Part shown: one piece after another, positions 5,664-25,807 of the stretch
Numbering within the stretch: position 1 is the first letter of the stretch
Layout of the letters: each line of letters begins with the position of its first letter
Origin: Paramoeba atlantica
Taxonomy: Eukaryota; Protista; Discosea
Assembly (NCBI GenBank): GCA_977017575.1
Contig: CDRNVI010000132.1
Coordinates: 1 to 25,807 of the forward strand
Direction of reading: 5' to 3'
Length of the DNA stretch: 25,807 nt
Program-made: the position numbers and the translations under genes
Notes under the pieces: model-generated
Databases searched by the model: none
Told to the model about the DNA's origin: nothing
What the model saw: the letters and a program-made list of their open reading frames with translations, nothing else

Positions 5664-7693
5664 ATGAATAATTATAAAATAAATAATATTGCAGTTAAAG
5701 ATAATAATATGAAAACTATATTACAATTATGTAATATGATTAATATAGATATACCAAAATTTTGTTATCATGAACAATTATCTATAGCAGGTAATTGTAG
5801 AATGTGTTTAGTTGAAGTAAAAGGAGCTATAAAACCTATAGCTTCTTGTGCATCCCCTTTAAATAATAATATGCATATATTAACTAATACTAAATTAGTT
5901 AAAAAGGCTAGAGAAGGTGTTTTAGAATTTTTATTATTAAATCATCCATTAGATTGTCCTATTTGTGATCAAGGAGGTGAATGTGATTTACAAGATCAAT
6001 CATTAATTTTTGGTAATGATAGAGGTAGATTTTATGAAAATAAAAGATCTGTTAATGATAAAGATTGTGGACCTTTAATAAAAACTATTATGACAAGATG
6101 TATTCATTGTACTAGATGTATACGTTTTATAGATGAGTTTATTGGTTATAAATATTTTGGTTTGATAGGTCGAGGACAAAATATAGAAATAAGTAATTTT
6201 TTATCAAAAAATATTAATTCGGAATTATCTGGTAATTTAATTGATTTATGCCCTGTAGGTGCTTTAACTTCTAAACCTTATTCATTCATTTCTAGACCTT
6301 GAGAACTTATTTCTTGAAATACTATAGATATTAATGATTTATTACATATAAATATTAGAATAGATATTAGAGATAGTGAAATATTAAGAGTTTTACCTTT
6401 ATTTAATGATTATATACATGAGATCTGAATCTCAGATCTAACTCGTTTTTCTTATGATAATCAAAAGAATAATCGAATAATTAATCCTTTAAAAAAGGAA
6501 GGTGCAAATAAATTTATTATATATAGTTGAGAAAAAGTATTAAATTTAATATTAAAAAAATGTTTAAATAGTAATTTACATTTTTTAATAGGTGATAATA
6601 TAGATAGTGAAACTGCTTTAGTAATAAAAAAGGAAAAAATTATTTTAATAATCATGAATTTACTATTAATTATAAAAAATTAACTAGGAATTCAAATAAT
6701 CGTAAAAATTATATTTTAGATTATAATATATATAAAGAATTAAATGAATTTAAAAATATTATATTAATTAATATAAATATTAGATTAGAATATCCTTTAT
6801 TAAATATAAAGTTAAAACGATTTAAAGATTTAAAATTATTAAATATTTATAATATAGGGACCTCTTATAATCAAAATTATAAAAATATAAATTATTCATC
6901 TAATTTATTAGAAGTAAAAAAATTTATAGAGGGAAAATCTTTATTAAATAATATTGTATTAAAAGCATCTAAAAATTTAATTTTATTAAATGATAATACT
7001 TTATTTAATTTTTTAATTACAACATTGAAAAATTTAAATTTAGAATCAAGTATTAATATAGGGTTTTTAAATAATTTAAATATAAATATTATAGCTAATG
7101 AATTAAATTTATTTAATTCATTAGTAAAATTTAATGATTATAGTTTTAAAAAAATGATTTATAAAGAAAATAATATTTTATATAATTTAAATAATTATAA
7201 TTATAATTATTTAAATTATAATTGTGATTATAATATTTTTCAAGGTTGTTATTTACCTATATTAAAAGAAATTAATAATTATGATTTATTATTACCATCA
7301 ATAACTCATTATGAAAAAAAAAGTTTATTTATAAATATATTTGGTTATTGTCAATCGACAAAATTTATTTTATTTCCGCCGAAGAATGCAAGAAATGATT
7401 GAAAAATATTATATATATTATTTAAAACAATTATTAGTGATGAAAAGATTATGAAATTATCTTTTAGTAATATTAGATTATTATTAAGTTCTTATAATAT
7501 AAATATAAATACTATATTAAATATATATAATAATAATGAAATATCAAATTATAAAAATATTATGGTTTTGAAAAATAAAAATTTATATAAAAATATGACT
7601 AATATATATTCTAATAATAAATTTTTACAATCATCAAAAATTTTAAACAGTTGTTTAATTAATTCTAAAAAAATATATAATAATTTTCATTAA
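5664..7693 (+). CDS. nad11: NADH dehydrogenase 75-kDa subunit (NuoG homolog), full length, with one -1 frameshift at ~6608-6680
   Basis: Fe-S motifs [32 protein letters not shown] and CIHCTRC...CPVGAL. The first frame stops at 6681-6683, while homology ([25 protein letters not shown]) continues in the -1 frame to TAA at 7691-7693. Confidence 0.95.
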
Positions 7694-10210: not shown

Positions 10211-11704
10211 ATGAATTTTACAATTATTTTTAAAAATCAGGAATATCATTCTATATATAATGATATTAAATATTTATTACCAGAAATATTTTTAATTTCT
10301 GGTGTTTTATTAATTTTAGTATTTATTATTTTTTATTCAAATATTAATGTATATAAATATATAAAATTAGTTTATTGTACTATTAATTTATTGGTATTTA
10401 TATTAATATTATTTATATTATTAAATATTAATAATATAGATAATAATTTTATTAATTCATCTTATTTATTATATAGTGACGGTATAATTTTTTTTTATAA
10501 AAATTTATTGTCAATAATTATGATTATATTATTAGTTACTTCTTATAATTATATGAGATTAAATAAATTATTAATATTTGAATTTTATATATTAATGTTA
10601 TTATCTTTTATTGGTATGATAACTTTATTATTATCATATGATTTTATTACAGCATATCTTTCTATCGAATTACAAAGTTTATGTTTTTATATTTTAGCGG
10701 CAATAAATAGAAATAAGAATAGTTCTATAGAAGCTGGTTTAAAATATTTTATATTAGGATCATTTTCATCAAGTTTATTAATAGTAGGTATAGCAATTAT
10801 ATATGGTGTAACTGGATTTACTAATTTTTATGATTTATCAAAATTATTTGAATTAGGTTTATATAATATAAATTGGGATTCTTATATATTTATAGGTTTA
10901 TTATTTATTAATATAGGATTATTTTTCAAATTAGCTATACCTCCGTTTCATATATGATTACCAGATATTTATGAAGGTTCTTTGAAAATAGTATTAGCTA
11001 TTTTTGCATTATTGCCTAAATTGGCTATATTAATATTTTTTTGAAAAATATATTCTATAATTTTAATAAAAGATTTAATCGACTGACAAATATTTTTTTT
11101 AATATTTATACTATTATCTTGATTTATAGGTATATTAGGGGCTTTACAATCTAAAAAATTTTCAAGATTAATAGCTTACAGTTCTATTAATCATATGGGT
11201 TTTATATTATTAATTTTAATATTAAATGATGTATTGACTTTAACTTTATATATAATAATTTATATTTTAGCTTTAATAAATATTTTAATAATATGATTAA
11301 ATATATTTAAATTTAATAATTATAAAGGGATTAATACTATATATCAATTTTTATATATTATAAAATCTAATAATTTATTATTTATAATTTTATTAATAGC
11401 TATATTTTCATTAGCAGGAATACCACCATTAGCTGGATTTTTCAGTAAATTTTTTATTTTCATTAGTGCATTAAAACAAAATTATTATTTATTAGTAGTA
11501 ATTGGACTTTTATTTAGTGTAGTTAGTTGTTTTTATTATTTAAGGTTAATAAAAATTATTATGTTTAATAATAGTTTTTATTGATTTTTTTTAACTCCTT
11601 TAAAAAGAAGTTATGCTTACATAATTGTTATATTATTTGTAGTAAATTCGATTTTTATATTATTATTGCCTTTTTTATTAGAATATTTAAATTATATAAT
11701 ATAA
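10211..11704 (+). CDS. nad2: NADH dehydrogenase subunit 2 (497 aa)
   Basis: YLSIELQSL, SIEAGLKYFILG, FKLAIPPFHIWLPDIYEG and SLAGIPPLAGFFSK; TAA at 11702-11704. Confidence 0.98.
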
Positions 11705-16544: not shown

Positions 16545-18206
<1,662 letters not shown>

Positions 18207-18222
18207 TAATTTTACTAATATA

Positions 18223-18296
18223 ATCCCTCTGGTCTAATTGGTTAAGACATATCACTCATAATGGTACTGATATAGGTTCAAGTCCTATGGGGGATA
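18223..18296 (+). tRNA. tRNA with CAU anticodon (Ile2/lysidine type more likely than Met)
   Basis: Cloverleaf with acceptor ATCCCTC/GGGGGAT, anticodon arm TATCA-CTCATAA-TGGTA and T arm ATAGG-TTCAAGT-CCTAT. Confidence 0.85.
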
Positions 18297-18297
18297 A

Positions 18298-18369
18298 ATA
18301 GTTGTAGTGTAGTGGTTAACATATTAGTCTTCAAAACTAATGACATAGGTTCAAATCCTATCAACTGTG
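18298..18369 (+). tRNA. trnW: tRNA-Trp(UCA)
   Basis: Anticodon arm TTAGT-CTTCAAA-ACTAA; acceptor ATAGTTG/CAACTGT with U-G at 2:71. Confidence 0.95.
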
Positions 18370-18401
18370 TTAATTATAGATGATATAATTAAATATAATA
18401 A

Positions 18402-18473
18402 AATAGGGTGACTGAAAGGTAAAGTATTGTTTTTTGGCAGCAAATCGTGTAGGTTCGAGTCCTACTCCTAAGT
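18402..18473 (+). tRNA. trnQ: tRNA-Gln(UUG)
   Basis: Anticodon arm TTGTT-TTTTGGC-AGCAA; acceptor AATAGGG/TCCTAAG mismatched at bp 1 and 2. Confidence 0.88.
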
Positions 18474-18486
18474 ATTAAAATTTTTT

Positions 18487-18559
18487 TTAAGGATAGTATA
18501 AATGGTTATTATAATTGATTGCAAATCTATAGATATCGGTTCGAGTCCGTTTCCTAACT
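18487..18559 (+). tRNA. trnC: tRNA-Cys(GCA)
   Basis: Anticodon loop TTGCAAA; acceptor TTAAGGA/TCCTAAC mismatched at bp 1 and 3. Confidence 0.88.
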
Positions 18560-18586
18560 TTTTTAAATTTAATATAAATATAATAA

Positions 18587-18659
18587 ATACCTATAGTTTA
18601 ATTGGTTAAAACATGCATTTGATAAGTGCAAATTGATAGTTCGAGTCTATCTGGGGTTA
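18587..18659 (+). tRNA. trnI: tRNA-Ile(GAU)
   Basis: TGCAT-TTGATAA-GTGCA; acceptor ATACCTA/TGGGGTT mismatched at bp 2 and 3. Confidence 0.93.
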
Positions 18660-18668
18660 TAAATAAAA

Positions 18669-18741
18669 AAATAGTTAGCTCAATTGGTAGAGCATCGGCC
18701 TTTTAAGCTGAGGGTTATAGGTTCGAGCCCTATACTATCTA
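18669..18741 (+). tRNA. trnK: tRNA-Lys(UUU)
   Basis: TCGGC-CTTTTAA-GCTGA; acceptor AAATAGT/ACTATCT mismatched at bp 2. Confidence 0.95.
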
Positions 18742-18747
18742 TAAAAA

Positions 18748-18820
18748 TATGGAATGGTGTAATAGGTTAGCACATCGAGTTGTGATTTCGATAGTATGAG
18801 TTCAAGTCTCATTTCTTACC
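18748..18820 (+). tRNA. trnH: tRNA-His(GUG)
   Basis: TCGAG-TTGTGAT-TTCGA, discriminator C73; acceptor TATGGAA/TTCTTAC mismatched at bp 1-3. Confidence 0.92.
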
Positions 18821-18886
18821 TAAATTAAGAATAATAAAATTAATAAAATATATATTTTATTAAAATTTTTTTATTAATTTGTAAAG

Positions 18887-18960
18887 ATAGATGTGATGGA
18901 ATTGGTAGACATATTAGTTTTAGGCACTAAATTTTAGGGGTTCGAGTCCCCTCATCTGTA
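18887..18960 (+). tRNA. trnL: tRNA-Leu(UAG), short variable loop
   Basis: TTAGT-TTTAGGC-ACTAA; acceptor ATAGATG/CATCTGT with U-G at 2:71. Confidence 0.92.
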
Positions 18961-18994
18961 TTGTATGTATAAAAAAAGAAAAAATATTTTTTAT

Positions 18995-19065
18995 AAGGAT
19001 GTAGTTTAAAGGTAAAATATCTATTTTGGGTGTAGACGTTATAGGTTCAAATCCTATCGTCCTGA
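18995..19065 (+). tRNA. trnP: tRNA-Pro(UGG)
   Basis: TCTAT-TTTGGGT-GTAGA; acceptor AAGGATG/CGTCCTG mismatched at bp 1 (A opposite G72). Confidence 0.94.
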
Positions 19066-19078
19066 TAATTATAATAAC

Positions 19079-19152
19079 AAGGAGGTAGCTTAATAGGCTA
19101 AAGCTTTAACCTGTCGAGTTAAAAGATGAGGGTTCGAATCCCTTCCTCCGCA
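19079..19152 (+). tRNA. trnD: tRNA-Asp(GUC)
   Basis: TTAAC-CTGTCGA-GTTAA; acceptor AAGGAGG/CCTCCGC mismatched at bp 1 and 2. Confidence 0.94.
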
Positions 19153-19452
19153 TAAAATATAATAAAATATGTTTATTTTATTACTATATAATCAAGATGT
19201 TTTGTATATAAAATATAAAATATTATCTATTATATCTATTATATCAATTTATGATAAATGTACATTTACCATATGAAATAACAGTCATAAAACATACATA
19301 TTTTACTTAAAATTTTTTTAAAAAGAGAAAAAATTATAAAATAAATAATTATAGTAATTTAAAAGATTTTATTTTTTTAATAAAATAAAAAATTAGTAAA
19401 TTAATATGATTATTTATTTTAGATATATCTTACTTTAATAATATATGATTTA

Positions 19453-19524
19453 TTTTTCTTCGTCTAATGGTTAGGACATTGCTCTTTCACAGCAGAAATA
19501 AGGGTTCAAATCCCTTAGAAATGA
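19453..19524 (+). tRNA. trnE: tRNA-Glu(UUC)
   Basis: TTGCT-CTTTCAC-AGCAG; acceptor TTTTTCT/AGAAATG with U-G at bp 1 and U-U at bp 2. Confidence 0.92.
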
Positions 19525-19625
19525 AATTATTTTATCCGTATTAATTTAATTTAATAAAATTTTTTTGTAAATTTTTGAAATCTATTATACACTGATTTAA
19601 GTATATTATTTGTCACATATAATAA

Positions 19626-19644
19626 GGGGGGTTTGGGGGGTTTG
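19626..19644. other. Isolated G-rich motif G6-T3-G6-T3-G in the non-coding gap of the tRNA cluster
   Basis: Directly visible GGGGGGTTTGGGGGGTTTG in otherwise extremely AT-rich spacer. Confidence 0.9.
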
Positions 19645-19698
19645 TATAAGAGATAATATTTTATTTTCATATACAAAAATTTTTATTAATTATTTTTT

Positions 19699-19781
19699 AA
19701 TGGTGTGATGGAATTGGTAAACATGATAGACTTAAAATCTATTGCCTTTTAGGCTTGAGGGTTCGAGTCCCTCCTCCAATA
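19699..19781 (+). tRNA. trnL: tRNA-Leu(UAA), long variable arm
   Basis: ATAGA-CTTAAAA-TCTAT, variable arm GCCT-TTT-AGGC; acceptor AATGGTG/CTCCAAT mismatched at bp 2 and bp 6. Confidence 0.93.
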
Positions 19782-19799
19782 ACGATGAGTTAATTATTT

Positions 19800-19872
19800 T
19801 TTAAGATGGAGTAATAGGTTAACTCAGTGGTCTCATGAGCCACAGATGTAGGTTCGAGTCCTACTCTTCTTA
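19800..19872 (+). tRNA. trnM: tRNA-Met(CAU)
   Basis: GTGGT-CTCATGA-GCCAC; acceptor TTTAAGA/TCTTCTT mismatched at bp 1-3. Confidence 0.88.
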
Positions 19873-19971
19873 TATAATTACGTAAATATTATTATGGATT
19901 ACATTTGAATATGTAATCAATTTTGAATTTTTATTAATTAGTAAAATATATGTATAAAAATATTTTCGAAA

Positions 19972-20211
19972 ATGGCAGGACAAGAAATTATGTTAATTTT
20001 TGCAAAAAAAGTAGGTGCTGGTTTAGCTACTATAGGTTTAGCAGGTGCTGGAGTAGGTATAGGAATAGTTTTTGGAGCTTTTTTAATTGCTTATTCACGT
20101 AATACTACAATTAAAAACGATTTATTTGGTTATACTTTATTAGGTTTCGCATTAACAGAAGCAATTGCTCTGTTTGCCCTAATGATGGCTTTCTTAATCT
20201 TATATACTTAA
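19972..20211 (+). CDS. atp9: ATP synthase subunit c (start may be the ATG at 19990)
   Basis: [21 protein letters not shown] glycine repeat and [12 protein letters not shown] with the proton-binding Glu. Confidence 0.99.
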
Positions 20212-20238
20212 TCAACCTATTTTTGTTGTTTTGTATTT

Positions 20239-20312
20239 AATTGGTTAGTTTAATTGGTTAAAATTATGATCTTCTAAATCATTAGATATAGGTTCGAGTC
20301 CTATACCAATTA
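20239..20312 (+). tRNA. trnR: tRNA-Arg(UCU)
   Basis: ATGAT-CTTCTAA-ATCAT; fully paired acceptor AATTGGT/ACCAATT. Confidence 0.95.
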
Positions 20313-20320
20313 TAATTTTT

Positions 20321-20401
20321 TATAGTGTGGCTGAGCGGTAAAGCGGTAGACTGTAAATCTATTGTATTTATACATCGTAGGTTCGAATCCTACCACTTCC
20401 A
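20321..20401 (+). tRNA. trnY: tRNA-Tyr(GUA), long variable arm
   Basis: GTAGA-CTGTAAA-TCTAT; acceptor TATAGTG/CACTTCC mismatched at bp 1-3. Confidence 0.95.
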
Positions 20402-20469
20402 TTTGATTAAAATATATAATAATGTTGAATAATTTTTAAACAAATCATTTTAAAATTTTTTTATAAATT

Positions 20470-21458
20470 TAAAATAGTATTAAACGGATATCTTGCCAAT
20501 AATAAGTTTATAGACGTTTTAAAACGTAATGTGAAAGTAAAATAATAATAATTTTTCAATATTCACGTATCTAAAGGGAAAACCCAATTAAATTAAATAA
20601 TTAAAGAATATCTAATGAATTGAATCATCTTAGTAATTAGTTAAAAAAAATAAAAATGATATTATTAGTAGTGGCGAGCGAAAATAAAATAGCTAAATTA
20701 AACAATAATATAAATAAAAAATATAATAATTTGGAATAATTAACAAAATAAGTAATAGTCTTGTTATTTTTTATTATTATTATTGGTTTTGAGTAAAATA
20801 AAAACTAAATTTGTTTGAAGATTAGAGTACCATCTCTAAAGGCTAAAGAATTATTATTGAGCGATAGTGAAAAAGTACTGTGAAGGAAAGATGAAAAGAA
20901 ATTTTTTAAAAATGTTGAAATAGATTTTGAAATTTAATACTAAATAGCACTTTAAGCATAAATAATTATATGTTAAAAGGTACCTTTTGCATAATGGGTC
21001 AGTGAGTTAATTATTGTAGCAAAATAAAAAATTATTAAATTTTTTAATTGTAATTAATATATTTATAGTTATAATAATTAGACCCGAAACCAAGTGATCT
21101 AGTCATGGGCAGATTGAAGTTAATTAAATATTAATGGAGGATCGAACCCGTTTATGTTGCAATATATTGGGATGACCTATGATTAGGGGTGAAAGGCTAA
21201 TCAAACTTGGAGATAGCTGGTTTTCTACGAAATCTATTTAAGTAGAGATGAAATTTAAATTTATATAAGGTAGAGCTACCATATTGGGTTGTCGAATCCA
21301 TATGAACTTCAAATAAATATAAAGTAAAAATTTTAATTTCGATATATGGCGAAAAGGTTGTATATCAAGAGGGAAAGAGCCCAGATTATAAATTAAGGTT
21401 TCTAAATTAATATTAAGTTAAAAAGTATATTATAATATTAACAATGAATAGGAGGTAG

Positions 21459-21492
<34 letters not shown>

Positions 21493-22772
21493 CAGCTCAC
21501 TATTGATAGATATTTATATACAAAAATATAACGAAAATAAATATTATACCGAAATTATAAAATATTATTTAAAATAATAATATTGGTAGTAGAACGTTTT
21601 ATAAAAGAAAAAAAAAATTGTTAAATTATAAAATTAAAATTGAATATACTGGCATAAGTAGCAAAAATAATGTTATAAACATTATCATCTAAAAATCTAA
21701 GGTTTCTAATGTCAAGATAAACTGCATTAGGTTAATCGGTCCCTAAAATGAATATGATAGTAATAATTGAAGGGTAGTTAAAGAGTTATAAGGATAACAT
21801 AATATTTTTAACGTTATTAGTAGATGACAGTTTATTTTTTAAATATTTTAGGATCAAATTTTAATAAATATAGTAAAACATTGTGTGATATATTCGAATA
21901 TATTGATTGAAATATTTAAAAAATAAATTCAAGAAAGAATACTAATATATAAAACCGTACTAAATCCTACACAGGAGGATTAGTAGAGAATACTAAGATG
22001 AATAATTGAATAATATCGAAGGAACTCGGCAAATTAACTCTGTAACTTCGGGAGAAAGAGTATTTTTATATATACATTATATGTATATAAAAATGTAACA
22101 GAATAGAGGATGGCGACTGTTTAACAAAAACACAGGACTTTGCAAAATTAATTAATGATGTATAAGGTCTGACACCTGCCCGGTGCTATAAAGGTAATTG
22201 TTATTGTTAATATATTATTTAATGTATTAGCTTTATATAGAATGAATAGTAAACGGCAGCTGTAAATATAACGGTTCGAAGGTAGCGAAATTCCTTGTCG
22301 AGTAAGTTTCGACCTTGCATGAATGGTGTAACGACTATCCTACTGTCTCCGGTATTATATTAGCGAAATTGAATTCTCTGTGCAGATGCAGCGTATTAAT
22401 AGCTAGACGGAAAGACCCTATGCACCTTTACTGCAGTTATATTTTGTTATTAAAAATTAAATTTATAGGATACAAACTAATCGTTTTAAAATTTTAATAT
22501 TAGTTAATTGTTTAGATAATCTTGGAATAGTTTGAATTTAATTTTTAAAACTTAATAATTTTTTATTGACAGAATATATTTGGTAGTTTCTCTGGGGCGG
22601 AGACCTCATAAAATGTAACTGAGGTGTACAAAGGTAATTAAAATTTTATTAGAAAATTTTGGCGTGTAATGGCTAAAAATTACTTAACTGTGAGATTTAC
22701 AAATCAAACAGAGATCTTTTTTATTAAAAAGGTCGGTCATAGTGATCCAATATAATTGAATGGAAAATAATC
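20470..22772 (+). rRNA. rnl: Mitochondrial large-subunit rRNA, 3'-truncated within domain V (both ends approximate)
   Basis: Colinear 23S landmarks: AGTAGTGGCGAGCGAA, GTACCTTTTGCATAATGGG, GACCCGAAACCAAGTGATCTA, AAGGAACTCGGCAAA, AAGGTAGCGAAATTCCTTGTCG, GACGGAAAGACCC, CTGGGGCGG and GGTCATAGTGATCC...GAATGGAA. Similarity then ends. Confidence 0.96.
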
Positions 22773-22850
22773 CTTTACAAGCTTCTCAGGTTTCTTGGAA
22801 TGATTTGGTATACACAAAATAAGTATTAAAGTGATAAGGTAGCTCTTCAT
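22773..22850 (-). pseudogene. 5' fragment of a bacterial gene with a signal-peptide-like N-terminus, cut at the junction
   Basis: Minus strand reads MKSYLITLILILCIPNHSKKPEKLVK from an ATG preceded by TAAAAATAAC (A-rich Bacteroidota-type start context), then runs into antisense rnl. Confidence 0.5.
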
Positions 22851-22879
22851 GTTATTTTTAATTGATACTTACTGCCTCA

Positions 22880-22908
22880 GCTATTACTTATGGCAAGTGA
22901 TAACAACT
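22880..22908 (-). repeat. Truncated attC-like half-site downstream of the GNAT gene
   Basis: Minus strand GTTGTTATCAC-TTGCC-ATAAGTAATAGC; 10/12 match to the ATGAGTAGTAGC arm of the 23462-23593 element. No partner arm found. Confidence 0.4.
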
Positions 22909-22923
22909 GACTTTATTTTCGGT

Positions 22924-23418
22924 TTATTTATATCGATATACTTCGTGATTGCCAAAATCGAGCAAACCAATGGTTGAATCAAATTTAGCCCCGAGGCGTA
23001 ATGCCAACTTCTTGGAGGGTCTGTTTGCTGGGTCAATATAACTGACCAATAAATCTAATTTCAGTTTTTCCAAGGCGAATTCCTTAACGGCCAGACCAGC
23101 TTCAACCCCATACCCTTTTCCTTGAAATTTAGGCAATAACCAATATCCCATTTCAGGTTCGGGCCATGGGTGGGATTTCCATAATCCAATAGTTCCTATC
23201 AGATTTCCAGAATCCTTTTCGGCAATTGCGAGGTACGAAAATCCGTTAAGCTCATAGTGACCAATATACGTAGCCATCAATCTCCATGATTCTTCAGGTG
23301 TTTTCACTCCTCCAACATATTTAGCATTCTCTTCTACAGCGTAAAAATCGGCGAAAATGGAATAATCTTTGTTTTTCCATTGTCTAAAAATCAGCCTATC
23401 AGTTTCTATACCTATCAT
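22924..23418 (-). CDS. GNAT family N-acetyltransferase (RimJ/RimL-like)
   Basis: IETDRLIFRQW, PEMGYWLLPKFQGKGYGVEA (acetyl-CoA motif A) and IDPANRPSKKLALRLG. Confidence 0.95.
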   Translation of the reverse strand: MIGIETDRLIFRQWKNKDYSIFADFYAVEENAKYVGGVKTPEESWRLMATYIGHYELNGFSYLAIAEKDSGNLIGTIGLWKSHPWPEPEMGYWLLPKFQGKGYGVEAGLAVKEFALEKLKLDLLVSYIDPANRPSKKLALRLGAKFDSTIGLLDFGNHEVYRYK

Positions 23419-23461
23419 ATTTGCTTAATAGTTATTCATTGAGTATACGCCCTCATCTTGT

Positions 23462-23593
23462 TACTAACGGTCTCGTGTATGAGTAGTAGCGGATTTCTAC
23501 TCACAAACCTTTCGGTTTTGCACTGACCTTTGTTCTATGTTTATGCTTTCATTTTATCATTTAAACCAATATTACCTATACACAATATTGTAC
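23462..23593. repeat. ~130-bp imperfect palindrome resembling an integron attC site
   Basis: Outer boxes TACTAAC (23462-23468) and ATTGTAC (23587-23593). Inner arms GTGTATGAGTAGTAGCGG (23475-23492) and CCAATATTACCTATACAC (23566-23583). Internal hairpin AAACC-TTTC-GGTTT. Confidence 0.6.
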
Positions 23594-23642
23594 CCTGGCA
23601 TACTTTAAATCGGATGTACTACCTGATAATTTTTGATGATAA

Positions 23643-24119
23643 TTATTTGCTTTTTAGCTTTTCAGCCACCTTGTCATAATATTCTTGTGTTAGTACCTCG
23701 GTCCAATTAGTGGGCTGTTCACCACTATAGAAAGCCAAATATGTTACATCTTTATCCTTGGTAGAGGAATGCCAATGCTCGATATCTTTCGCACATTTAA
23801 TTACGTCACCTTCTTTCAGAATTACAGGCTCTTTACCTCTCTCCTGATAATAGGCTTCGCCATCTACAATTATTAAAATCTGCACAGAACTATGTTTATG
23901 CCAATCCAAGGTGGAGTTGGCTCTAAAGGTTGCTTTTGTAATATTATAACCCAAGTCGGCATCATCGTGAATTATGGCATTTAACCAAGCCTCCCCAATG
24001 TAATGCGTATTTGGTGCCTTTGTGCCCTCAGTATGATAGGAGGAAACGTTATAATCAGAACTTTGGGCAAATAAGTATAGAGGGGCTAAAATAAATAGGG
24101 TGAAAATTAAATTTCTCAT
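23643..24119 (-). CDS. Cupin domain protein with N-terminal signal peptide
   Basis: Cupin motifs WHKHSSVQILIIVDGEAYYQE and GDVIKCAKDIEHWHS; signal-like MRNLIFTLFILAPLYLFAQ. Confidence 0.9.
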   Translation of the reverse strand: MRNLIFTLFILAPLYLFAQSSDYNVSSYHTEGTKAPNTHYIGEAWLNAIIHDDADLGYNITKATFRANSTLDWHKHSSVQILIIVDGEAYYQERGKEPVILKEGDVIKCAKDIEHWHSSTKDKDVTYLAFYSGEQPTNWTEVLTQEYYDKVAEKLKSK

Positions 24120-24326
24120 TTTATACTTTTTAAATTAATTATTTCCAGTGGTCGTTCGGAGTTCATTGCTTGAGTACAACACATTTATGTCAACAATTTA
24201 CCCTTTTTATGCGGTTTGCCTTCTTGGTTGTTGAGAGAAATATTACCATTTTAATTTAAACTGTATATTTACCCCGTCAACACATTCTGACGGCTTAGAG
24301 TGGTCGATTACCTAAAACACATATCT

Positions 24327-24614
24327 ATGGCTAATCAGAATGAACAAAACCGTTGCCCGTATTGTAATGCGGCCTTTGCTACGGCAGGTACACGCTACGT
24401 ACCACAAATTTCCCAGCTTACCCCAGCACAAACACAACTTTTGGATTTTGCTAATGCCCTGGATGCCCCAGATTTGGTTAAAGCCCTAAAACTCATCCAT
24501 GATCTGGCGCTCTACCACTCAGACGGACTTATAGATGACCCGGAAAAAGTGGCACTCTATTGGGTAAAAGGGCTGTGGGAGCATATTGAGGGGATTGAAG
24601 GAGGGAAAAATTGA
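24327..24614 (+). CDS. Hypothetical protein (~95 aa; likely ATG start at 24327 rather than the GTG at 24300)
   Basis: Open frame with a CPYC motif and a helical C-terminal half (ALKLIHDLALYHSD...ALYWVKGLWE). No recognised family. Confidence 0.65.
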   Translation: MANQNEQNRCPYCNAAFATAGTRYVPQISQLTPAQTQLLDFANALDAPDLVKALKLIHDLALYHSDGLIDDPEKVALYWVKGLWEHIEGIEGGKN

Positions 24615-24687
24615 AAATGGAAAATGGAAAATTGAAAGTGGAAAATGGAAAATGGAAAGTTGAAAATGGAAAGTTGAAAATGGAAAA
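24611..24687. repeat. Tandem array of 11 heptamers T(G/T)GAAA(A/G), followed by TTGAAC repeats at ~24694-24708
   Basis: Parsed directly: TTGAAAA TGGAAAA TGGAAAA TTGAAAG TGGAAAA TGGAAAA TGGAAAG TTGAAAA TGGAAAG TTGAAAA TGGAAAA. Confidence 0.95.
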
Positions 24688-24740
24688 CTGAGTTTGAACT
24701 TGAACTTGTTTTTTAATTAGGTGATGGGTCTTTGTCTGGG

Positions 24741-25568
24741 CTAATCTTCTTGGGGAACAAGCGCCACAATCCGTAAAGGTGCGCCACTACCGCCCTTAAT
24801 TTTCATGGGCAGGGCTATAATTTCAAATCCGGTTGTGGGCAGTTGGTCCAAGTTGGTCAGGTTTTCAAAAGCGGGAATGTCCTGTCCCAGTAAAATTACA
24901 TGACTTTGAAAGTATTGCGACTGGCCATAGTCTATGCTAGGGGTGTCTATACCAATGGAGGCAATTTTGCGGTTATCTACCAACCACTGTGCCGCTTCGG
25001 GCGAAAGTCCGGGAAAGTGCAGCAGCTTTATGGCGCCCTCTCCCCGCTGGTCCGTTCCCAAATATTGCATTTTGTCCGGATAATATTTGGAAAAATTGGT
25101 TTGCAGGAGTACAATGCTTCCCTCCGGGATGGGGTTGCCCTGTTGCTTTTCCCATGCTTGCAAATCGGCGATGGTAATCAAATAATCCGGATTGTCCATT
25201 GCCTTGGCGGAGACGTCCACTTTAATGGCGTTGCCTATCAACTTTTCGAGCGGAATCTCATCTACCGTTTGTTTGTTGGCCGCAAAATGAATGGGCGCAT
25301 CAATATGGGTGCCACCATGCTCGGCCGTGGTAAAATTATTGGCGGCGTAAAAGTAGCCCTTGTCCGTTTGCCCATGAAACACGGTATCCAACTCAAATTC
25401 TTGGGCGGTGACCCAATACACGGTCTCGCGGGAATAGGTGTGGGAGAGGTCCACTATCTTTTTTTGTTGGGTTTGGCCCAACTTTTCCGCTTTGCCATCT
25501 GTGCTAAGGTTGGGCTGGCAGGCCATAAGGGTGAACACTGTGCATAGGTATGGTACGGTTTTTTTCAT
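24741..25568 (-). CDS. Cyclase family metal-dependent hydrolase (kynurenine formamidase-like), predicted lipoprotein
   Basis: Signature AEHGGTHIDAPIHF, GIDTPSID, ENLTNLDQLP and KIKGGSGAPLR. Likely start MKKTVPYLCTVFTLMAC (lipobox LMAC) at 25568. Confidence 0.95.
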   Translation of the reverse strand: MKKTVPYLCTVFTLMACQPNLSTDGKAEKLGQTQQKKIVDLSHTYSRETVYWVTAQEFELDTVFHGQTDKGYFYAANNFTTAEHGGTHIDAPIHFAANKQTVDEIPLEKLIGNAIKVDVSAKAMDNPDYLITIADLQAWEKQQGNPIPEGSIVLLQTNFSKYYPDKMQYLGTDQRGEGAIKLLHFPGLSPEAAQWLVDNRKIASIGIDTPSIDYGQSQYFQSHVILLGQDIPAFENLTNLDQLPTTGFEIIALPMKIKGGSGAPLRIVALVPQED

Positions 25569-25682
25569 GACCTCTTGGTTTTGGATAACGGATACTGAAG
25601 TTCGGAATTTTTCCTTCAATAACAAGAAATGCCGTGCATTGCGATGGGCATACACGGCATTCCATATACGGTATCTTGTTTG

Positions 25683-25807
25683 CTATTTGGAGGTTTGGTC
25701 TATAAATGCGTCCACATCCTTTTTAAATTTTGCCATGGAAGGGATATGCGTATACATCATGTGCCCAGCTTCATAATATTTCATGATGATGTTCTTTTTC
25801 AGCTCAG
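25683..25807 (-). CDS. C-terminal fragment of a peptidase S10 family serine carboxypeptidase (missed by the ORF track)
   Basis: Minus strand ELKKNIIMKYYEAGHMMYTHIPSMAKFKKDVDAFIDQTSK-TAG; the AGHM catalytic-His motif of S10 peptidases. Confidence 0.85.
   Translation of the reverse strand, partial: ELKKNIIMKYYEAGHMMYTHIPSMAKFKKDVDAFIDQTSK

Follow-up and report, generated by a model that had tools for sequence, protein, structure and literature searches.

Transfer RNA genes and their acceptor stems

The stretch of DNA considered here, which we call the window, is the full 25,807 nucleotides (nt) of contig CDRNVI010000132.1 from the Paramoeba atlantica assembly GCA_977017575.1, and its positions 1-22769 are part of a 39.4-kilobase (kb) circular mitochondrial genome (circular contig of 39,429 base pairs (bp)). 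Within this mitochondrial part lie 15 transfer RNA (tRNA) genes at positions 18223-20401, all on the + strand, and the acceptor stems of 11 of them are mismatched among the first three pairs (bp 1-3), a pattern that probably reflects editing of the tRNA 5′ ends. ARAGORN and the Rfam model RF00005 called the same 15 genes, each above the Rfam gathering score, in agreement with the hand-drawn folds of the initial annotation. All stems were read in a canonical register, in which the 5′ strand comprises the 7 nt preceding U8-N9 and the D stem, and the 3′ strand comprises the 7 nt following the T stem; position 8 is then T in 15/15 genes. The ARAGORN folds of tRNA-Cys and tRNA-His shift the stem and place a bulge at the 7/8 junction; we rejected them because the canonical register restores U8 and the 2-nt spacer. 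Stems of 8 bp, in which position -1 faces position 73, were likewise treated as chance A:T pairs and not as a real extension. The Rfam local alignments clipped the heavily mismatched genes, spanning model positions 4-67 for tRNA-Tyr and tRNA-Met, 5-66 for tRNA-His and 3-68 for tRNA-Gln.

The affected genes and pairs were exactly those listed in the initial annotation, and the 5′ ends that it had derived by copying the 3′ strand were also correct. All three pairs are mismatched in tRNA-His(GUG) (18748-18820), for which 3′-templated replacement would require the edits U1>G, A2>U and U3>A and would restore G1:C72; in tRNA-Met(CAU) (19800-19872; U1>A, U2>A, U3>G); and in tRNA-Tyr(GUA) (20321-20401; U1>G, A2>G, U3>A), a tRNA with a long variable arm whose predicted mature 5′ strand is GGAAGUG. 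Two pairs are mismatched in tRNA-Gln(UUG) (18402-18473; bp 1 and 2; A1>C, A2>U), tRNA-Cys(GCA) (18487-18559; bp 1 and 3; U1>G, A3>U, restoring G1:C72), tRNA-Ile(GAU) (18587-18659; bp 2 and 3; U2>A, A3>C) and tRNA-Asp(GUC) (19079-19152; bp 1 and 2; A1>G, A2>C). A single mismatch within bp 1-3 is found in tRNA-Lys(UUU) (18669-18741; bp 2; A2>G), tRNA-Pro(UGG) (18995-19065; bp 1; A1>C, restoring C1:G72), tRNA-Glu(UUC) (19453-19524; a U:U at bp 2 beside a U1:G72 wobble; U2>A) and tRNA-Leu(UAA) (19699-19781; long variable arm; an A:A at bp 2; A2>U), the last of which also has a U:U at bp 6.

No editing is predicted for the four remaining genes, whose acceptor stems are fully paired: tRNA-Trp(UCA) (18298-18369), which reads UGA under genetic code 4 and has a U2:G71 wobble; tRNA-Leu(UAG) (18887-18960), with the same U2:G71 wobble; tRNA-Arg(UCU) (20239-20312); and a tRNA(CAU) at 18223-18296. 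The C4:G69 and C5:G68 pairs of this tRNA(CAU), which we take to be the recognition elements of the bacterial lysidine-modified tRNA-Ile2, suggest that it probably reads AUA as a tRNA-Ile(CAU) and is not a second tRNA-Met. In two of the related genomes described below, L010 and L012, the orthologous genes have the same CCUC/GGGG core in the stem, together with mismatched 5′ ends.

Mismatches occupied 21 of the 45 window pairs at bp 1-3 versus 1 of the 60 at bp 4-7 (Fisher p = 9.5e-9), the latter being the U:U of tRNA-Leu(UAA), which the initial annotation had already named as the only departure from normal pairing at bp 4-7. The count of 11/15 holds for the window and is not the organelle total: on the complete circle, 14 of 19 tRNA genes, with 14 different anticodons, are mismatched at bp 1-3 (24/57 pairs, versus 1/76 at bp 4-7). 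The four genes outside the window (Asn-GUU, Ser-UGA, Ser-GCU and Phe-GAA) lie past two ribosomal RNA (rRNA) genes, at 14549-14725 in L003 and at 715-891 and 2607-2803 in L008, and three of them have a mismatch at bp 1 or 2. No gene for an Ala, Gly, Val, Thr or CGN-reading Arg tRNA was found among the 19 on the circle, and these tRNAs are presumably imported.

Of the changes predicted in the window, 18 are transversions and 3 are transitions, so that editing by deaminases is ruled out. In this mitochondrial genome, A or T occupies the 5′ side of all 24 mismatches, and the G+C content (GC) is 14% at 5′ positions 1-3 versus 42% at the facing 3′ positions 70-72; the spacers of the tRNA cluster have a GC of 11%. 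Pairing was compared with chance by permuting the 5′ strands among tRNAs. In this shuffle test, 9 mismatches were observed at bp 1 versus 12.0 expected and 10 at bp 2 versus 10.9 expected; bp 3 was intermediate (5 observed, 11.2 expected) and bp 4-7 were fully constrained. The asymmetry in GC, together with pairing at the level of chance, suggests that selection for pairing acts weakly or not at all on 5′ positions 1-3, but does act on their 3′ partners. Outside the acceptor stem the window tRNAs appear ordinary, with intact D, anticodon and T stems, U8 and anticodons, and the genes do not overlap (spacers of 1-366 nt).

Fidelity of the sequence and recurrence in related genomes

The initial annotation had recognized that consensus errors in the mismatched bases would overturn its proposal. 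Positions 18200-20420 are 100% identical in three independent assemblies in the European Nucleotide Archive (ENA) (L001/L004, L002 and L003), and therefore the mismatches are not consensus errors. Furthermore, at least 95% of the 31-mers of the tRNA stretch are present in six public runs from three studies. Compared with other assemblies of the same mitochondrial genome, the window contains 8 small indels (at 6625, 8688, 9109, 9878, 11923, 12812, 14083 and 16292) and 2 substitutions (at 10455 and 21293), none of them within 18200-20420. Each indel disrupts a frame that is intact in the other assemblies, the affected sites being nad11, the nad1/nad4 boundary, nad4, two open reading frames (ORFs), atp1 and cox3 (intact lengths of 676 amino acids for nad11, 490 for nad4, 499 for atp1 and 289 for cox3), and some fall in homopolymer runs. 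Consensus errors in this assembly are the most likely cause of these indels, rather than frameshifting or insertional editing.

The 8 frame-breaking indels, the chimeric structure of the window with its bacterial-like tail from 22770, and the absence of several tRNA species from the mitochondrial genome, which means that tRNA import must exist, might together suggest that consensus errors in a chimeric contig produced the mismatches or that the genes are pseudogenes replaced by imported cytosolic tRNAs. This explanation is largely refuted by the identity of the tRNA region in three independent assemblies, including the circular 39,429-bp contig. Dead genes are also hard to reconcile with intact D, anticodon and T stems (mismatch rates of at most 2%) and with a preserved U8 and anticodon; moreover, the pattern recurs in four diverged relatives, and the same argument was used for Acrasis (PMC4202320). 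We thus consider an artefact or a set of dead genes very improbable.

Mitochondrial contigs of relatives were found through their atp1 proteins and read by the same register rule. Mismatches at bp 1-3 affected 9/9 tRNA genes in L010 (atp1 82% identical to that of this organism), 11/15 in L011 (78%), 15/19 in L012 (77%) and 12/16 in L014 (76%; one dubious call dropped). L012 is a 48-kb circle carrying the exact atp1 of Paramoeba pemaquidensis; it corresponds to ENA ERZ24894578, ctg2963c (48,196 bp, circular), and the same metagenome sample contains one copy of the mitochondrial genome studied here (ctg2721l). These four genomes and the present one form a pooled set of 78 tRNA genes, from which L013 was left out because the flank obtained contained no tRNA genes.

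In the pooled set, 96/234 pairs were mismatched at bp 1-3 versus 6/312 at bp 4-7, with 43, 29 and 24 mismatches at bp 1, 2 and 3 and 0, 4, 2 and 0 at bp 4, 5, 6 and 7, respectively. In the other stems, at most 2% of pairs were mismatched (anticodon stems, 5/390; T stems, 3/385), so that structural constraint on the genes is otherwise normal. Some animal mitochondrial tRNAs work with mismatched stems, and the tRNAs here could likewise be used as transcribed, with processing enzymes, synthetases and the ribosome tolerating frayed acceptor ends and no editing taking place. Tolerance, however, gives no account of the sharp stop after bp 3 (mismatches in 0/78 genes at both bp 4 and bp 7), nor of a decay that affects the 5′ strand only while the 3′ strand keeps its G and C. 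Moreover, the three consecutive mismatches in tRNA-His, tRNA-Met and tRNA-Tyr would leave acceptor stems of 4 bp, and all tested organisms with such a pattern edit their tRNAs (PMC4284800). Unedited use of the mismatched tRNAs accordingly appears improbable.

The compositional asymmetry also recurred in the pooled set, with a GC of 15% at 5′ positions 1-3 versus 45% at 3′ positions 70-72, while positions 4-7 and 66-69 were balanced (53% versus 52%); 89 of the 96 mismatched 5′ letters were A or T. The five genomes are too diverged for substitution rates at 5′ positions 1-3 and 3′ positions 70-72 to be compared among orthologs, with saturating differences of 48-63% in all four stem segments. Nevertheless, the 3′ strands were conserved in the clearest ortholog sets, those of tRNA-His, tRNA-Tyr and tRNA-Ile, and the 3′ strand of tRNA-Tyr is identical to that of its Paramoeba-type ortholog, with a different 5′ strand.

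Mismatches alone do not reveal which strand is corrected, and 3′ acceptor editing is known in some animal mitochondria (PMC4284800); copying of the 5′ strand might instead renew the 3′ acceptor half, in the manner of metazoan-type 3′ editing. It is, however, the 3′ positions 70-72 that are GC-rich (42-45%) and shared among relatives for tRNA-His, tRNA-Tyr and tRNA-Ile, whereas the 5′ positions look neutral (GC of 14-15%, versus 11% in the spacers). Metazoan-type 3′ editing is marked by overlapping tRNA genes or truncated 3′ ends; the 15 window genes show no overlaps, and with spacers of at least 1 nt throughout, its usual cause is absent. Rewriting of the 3′ strand would also yield stem tops composed entirely of A and U, losing C72 and G72. 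We give this direction of editing very little credence; the strand asymmetry points to replacement of the 5′ strand with the 3′ strand as template.

A proposed repair pathway and tRNA-His

Collectively, these findings favor 5′ tRNA editing of the type found in Acanthamoeba and Dictyostelium as a process acting on these mitochondrial tRNAs, to which we assign a probability of approximately 85%. The confinement of mismatches to bp 1-3, the transversions, the absence of gene overlaps, the intact remaining stems and the recurrence in relatives all support the initial annotation's reading of the pattern as of the Acanthamoeba and dictyostelid type, and on every criterion that can be tested from sequence the gene-level pattern agrees with editing of the Acanthamoeba type. 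Three observations weigh against this interpretation. The U:U at bp 6 of tRNA-Leu(UAA) lies beyond the reach of known 3-nt editing and would stay unrepaired; pooled over the five genomes, the shuffle test found bp 1-3 paired above chance, which means that the 5′ letters are not wholly neutral; and the window assembly carries indels elsewhere in the mitochondrial genome, though outside the tRNA region. Even taken together, tolerated mismatches, 3′-strand rewriting and artefacts or pseudogenes remain an unlikely set of alternatives to 5′ editing.

By analogy with Acanthamoeba and Dictyostelium, we infer the editing event, the enzymes and their order of action as follows. The tRNAs would be transcribed with 5′ ends that fail to pair with the 3′ strand of the acceptor stem, and a nuclease acting during 5′ processing or later would remove the first 1-3 mismatched nucleotides. 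The end would subsequently be rebuilt in the 3′-to-5′ direction by a Thg1-like protein (TLP) encoded in the nucleus and targeted to mitochondria, with positions 72, 71 and 70 as the template, and Watson-Crick pairs would be restored. Since the 5′ letters would be rewritten in every RNA, their gene copies would be nearly free of selection and could drift toward the AT-rich neutral composition. The enzymology proposed here is that of the Dictyostelium TLPs, which carry out templated 3′-to-5′ addition on 5′-truncated mitochondrial tRNAs; DdiTLP3 is the mitochondrial Thg1-like protein responsible for templated 3′-5′ repair (PMC5041481, PMC6471195). The nuclease that removes the mismatched 5′ letters has been identified in no organism (PMC5041481, PMC6471195, PMC4284800), and a heavily edited lineage would be a reasonable place to seek it.

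The tRNA-His genes offer a view of how the 5′ end may have decayed. The window gene is preceded by A and hence does not encode G-1; its discriminator is C73. The 3′ strand UAC and C73 are common to this genome, L010 and L014, whereas the 5′ strand is UAU here, GAA in L010 and GUA, fully paired, in L014. The L014 gene (16027-16100) is of bacterial style, encoding G-1 opposite C73 and pairing GUA with UAC throughout the top of the stem. Set beside the window gene at 18748-18820 (A-1, U1, A2, U3), it provides a clean before-and-after pair for 5′-end decay.

In tRNA-His, templated 3′-to-5′ addition could proceed one step further and place G-1 opposite C73. A similar addition is known in Dictyostelium, where DdiTLP2 adds G-1 opposite C73 of mitochondrial tRNA-His (PMC5041481, PMC6471195). 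As here, the Dictyostelium mitochondrial tRNA-His has C73 and no encoded G-1; unlike here, it is unedited and free of acceptor mismatches, whereas in the window gene positions 1-3 would need rebuilding, possibly together with G-1. Because bp 1 and 2 pair at chance level and tRNA-His has lost four 5′ letters that L014 encodes, 5′ repair might even be near-constitutive, with nucleotides 1 and 2 stripped and resynthesized, paired or not, in most or all mitochondrial tRNAs, and with A3, U2, G1 and then G-1 opposite C73 of tRNA-His laid down in one 3′-5′ run. We regard near-constitutive repair as a doubtful extension of the editing model; if true, one run would merge tasks that are split between TLP3 and TLP2 in Dictyostelium. 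With three predicted edits and a non-encoded G-1 opposite C73, tRNA-His would lend itself well to the question of whether a single Thg1-like enzyme does both.

Genomic source and comparison with known editing systems

The mitochondrial genes of window positions 1-22769 all lie on the + strand and use genetic code 4, in a sequence with a GC of 21%. Ahead of the tRNA cluster they run in the order cob, orf167, nad3, atp6, nad4L, nad5, nad6, nad11, nad1, nad4, nad2, two ribosomal-protein-like ORFs, atp1, cox2, cox3 and cox1. The tRNA cluster follows 3′ of cox1 (18223-19872), and is succeeded by atp9 (19972-20211), trnR and trnY (20239-20401) and the large-subunit rRNA gene (20475-22790), for which the Rfam match ends at model position 2472/2925. 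Up to 22769, the window is 99.94% identical to contigs of four independent ENA metagenome assemblies; identity to these four copies ends there, inside the large-subunit rRNA gene. The remaining approximately 3 kb (22770-25807) has a GC of 41%, does not occur in the mitochondrial genome and carries bacterial-looking ORFs on the - strand at 22924-23418, 23643-24119 and 24741-25655. The window is thus a chimeric contig, mitochondrial to 22769 with a bacterial-like tail from 22770.

By atp1, the closest named relative is P. pemaquidensis (77% identical). Exact atp1 matches were found only in Logan and ENA metagenome assemblies, with none in NCBI or UniRef, and the mitochondrial genome has apparently not yet been deposited with annotation. 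Near-complete copies of the same mitochondrial sequence occur in runs under three organism labels in three studies and in the four ENA metagenome assemblies, a distribution suggesting that the amoeba recurs in other samples as an associate or contaminant. Logan contigs from four public runs, when aligned with the window, gave short nuclear-tRNA-like fragments at 18676-18716 and 19755-19776, which are unrelated.

The published P. pemaquidensis mitochondrial genome (KX611830; PMC5601477) shares with the present one a single-strand gene layout and clustered tRNA genes, and comprises 48.5 kb with 20 tRNA genes, whereas the present genome has 39.4 kb and 19 tRNA genes. Neither that paper nor its supplements contain the terms tRNA editing, acceptor or Thg1 (PMC5601477). 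Our analysis adds Paramoeba-related flabellinean amoebae to the lineages predicted to repair mitochondrial tRNAs by reverse (3′-to-5′) RNA polymerization, and these include a genome of the P. pemaquidensis type, the published description of which does not mention editing. Five related genomes with differently decayed 5′ ends form a natural comparative series for following drift under a repair shield and for recognizing the tRNAs that resist it.

Mitochondrial tRNA sets are small in chytrid and monoblepharid fungi, with only 7-9 genes. These fungi, Spizellomyces punctatus among them (Laforest 2004, cited in PMC4284800), share with the present genome both the signature in the genes and the 3-nt limit, and differ from it in belonging to a distant lineage. 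In Heterolobosea, 5′ editing has been predicted from gene sequence for 8/11 tRNAs in Acrasis kona and 8/20 in Naegleria (PMC4202320), again on the basis of bp 1-3 mismatches in otherwise well-conserved tRNAs; that group belongs to a different supergroup, and the present case adds the asymmetry in strand composition and a four-genome comparison. Editing of 5′ ends has been confirmed by tRNA sequencing in Acanthamoeba (12/15 tRNAs), Dictyostelium, Polysphondylium, Physarum and several chytrids (PMC4284800). The rewriting of G:U pairs varies among editing species (PMC4284800), and such pairs occur here at bp 1-2 of tRNA-Glu, tRNA-Trp and tRNA-Leu(UAG).

The closest parallel is the editing described in Acanthamoeba castellanii (Lonergan & Gray 1993; Price & Gray 1999; reviewed in PMC4284800). 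Acanthamoeba is likewise an amoebozoan (Discosea) that uses code 4 (UGA = Trp) and has a reduced tRNA set with mismatches only at bp 1-3, and its tRNAs need base changes of any kind, including transversions. Its editing was demonstrated by tRNA sequencing and in vitro activity, whereas here it is predicted from the genes alone. Acanthamoeba belongs to Centramoebida, whereas the present organism is a Paramoeba-related flabellinean, and the set of affected tRNAs differs; cox1 and cox2 are separate genes here, whereas they are fused in Acanthamoeba, according to a review citing the Acanthamoeba genome paper. The initial annotation had called the pattern extensive: with 14/19 tRNAs affected it is indeed broad, but the term is relative, and the share affected is no larger than in Acanthamoeba (74%, 14/19, versus 80%, 12/15). 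The phenomenon, its sequence signature and its enzymology were already well established, with Amoebozoa as the group where such editing is most at home, and the current picture of the editing mechanism is unchanged by this case; what is new is the Paramoeba-related lineage and the comparative series that it provides.

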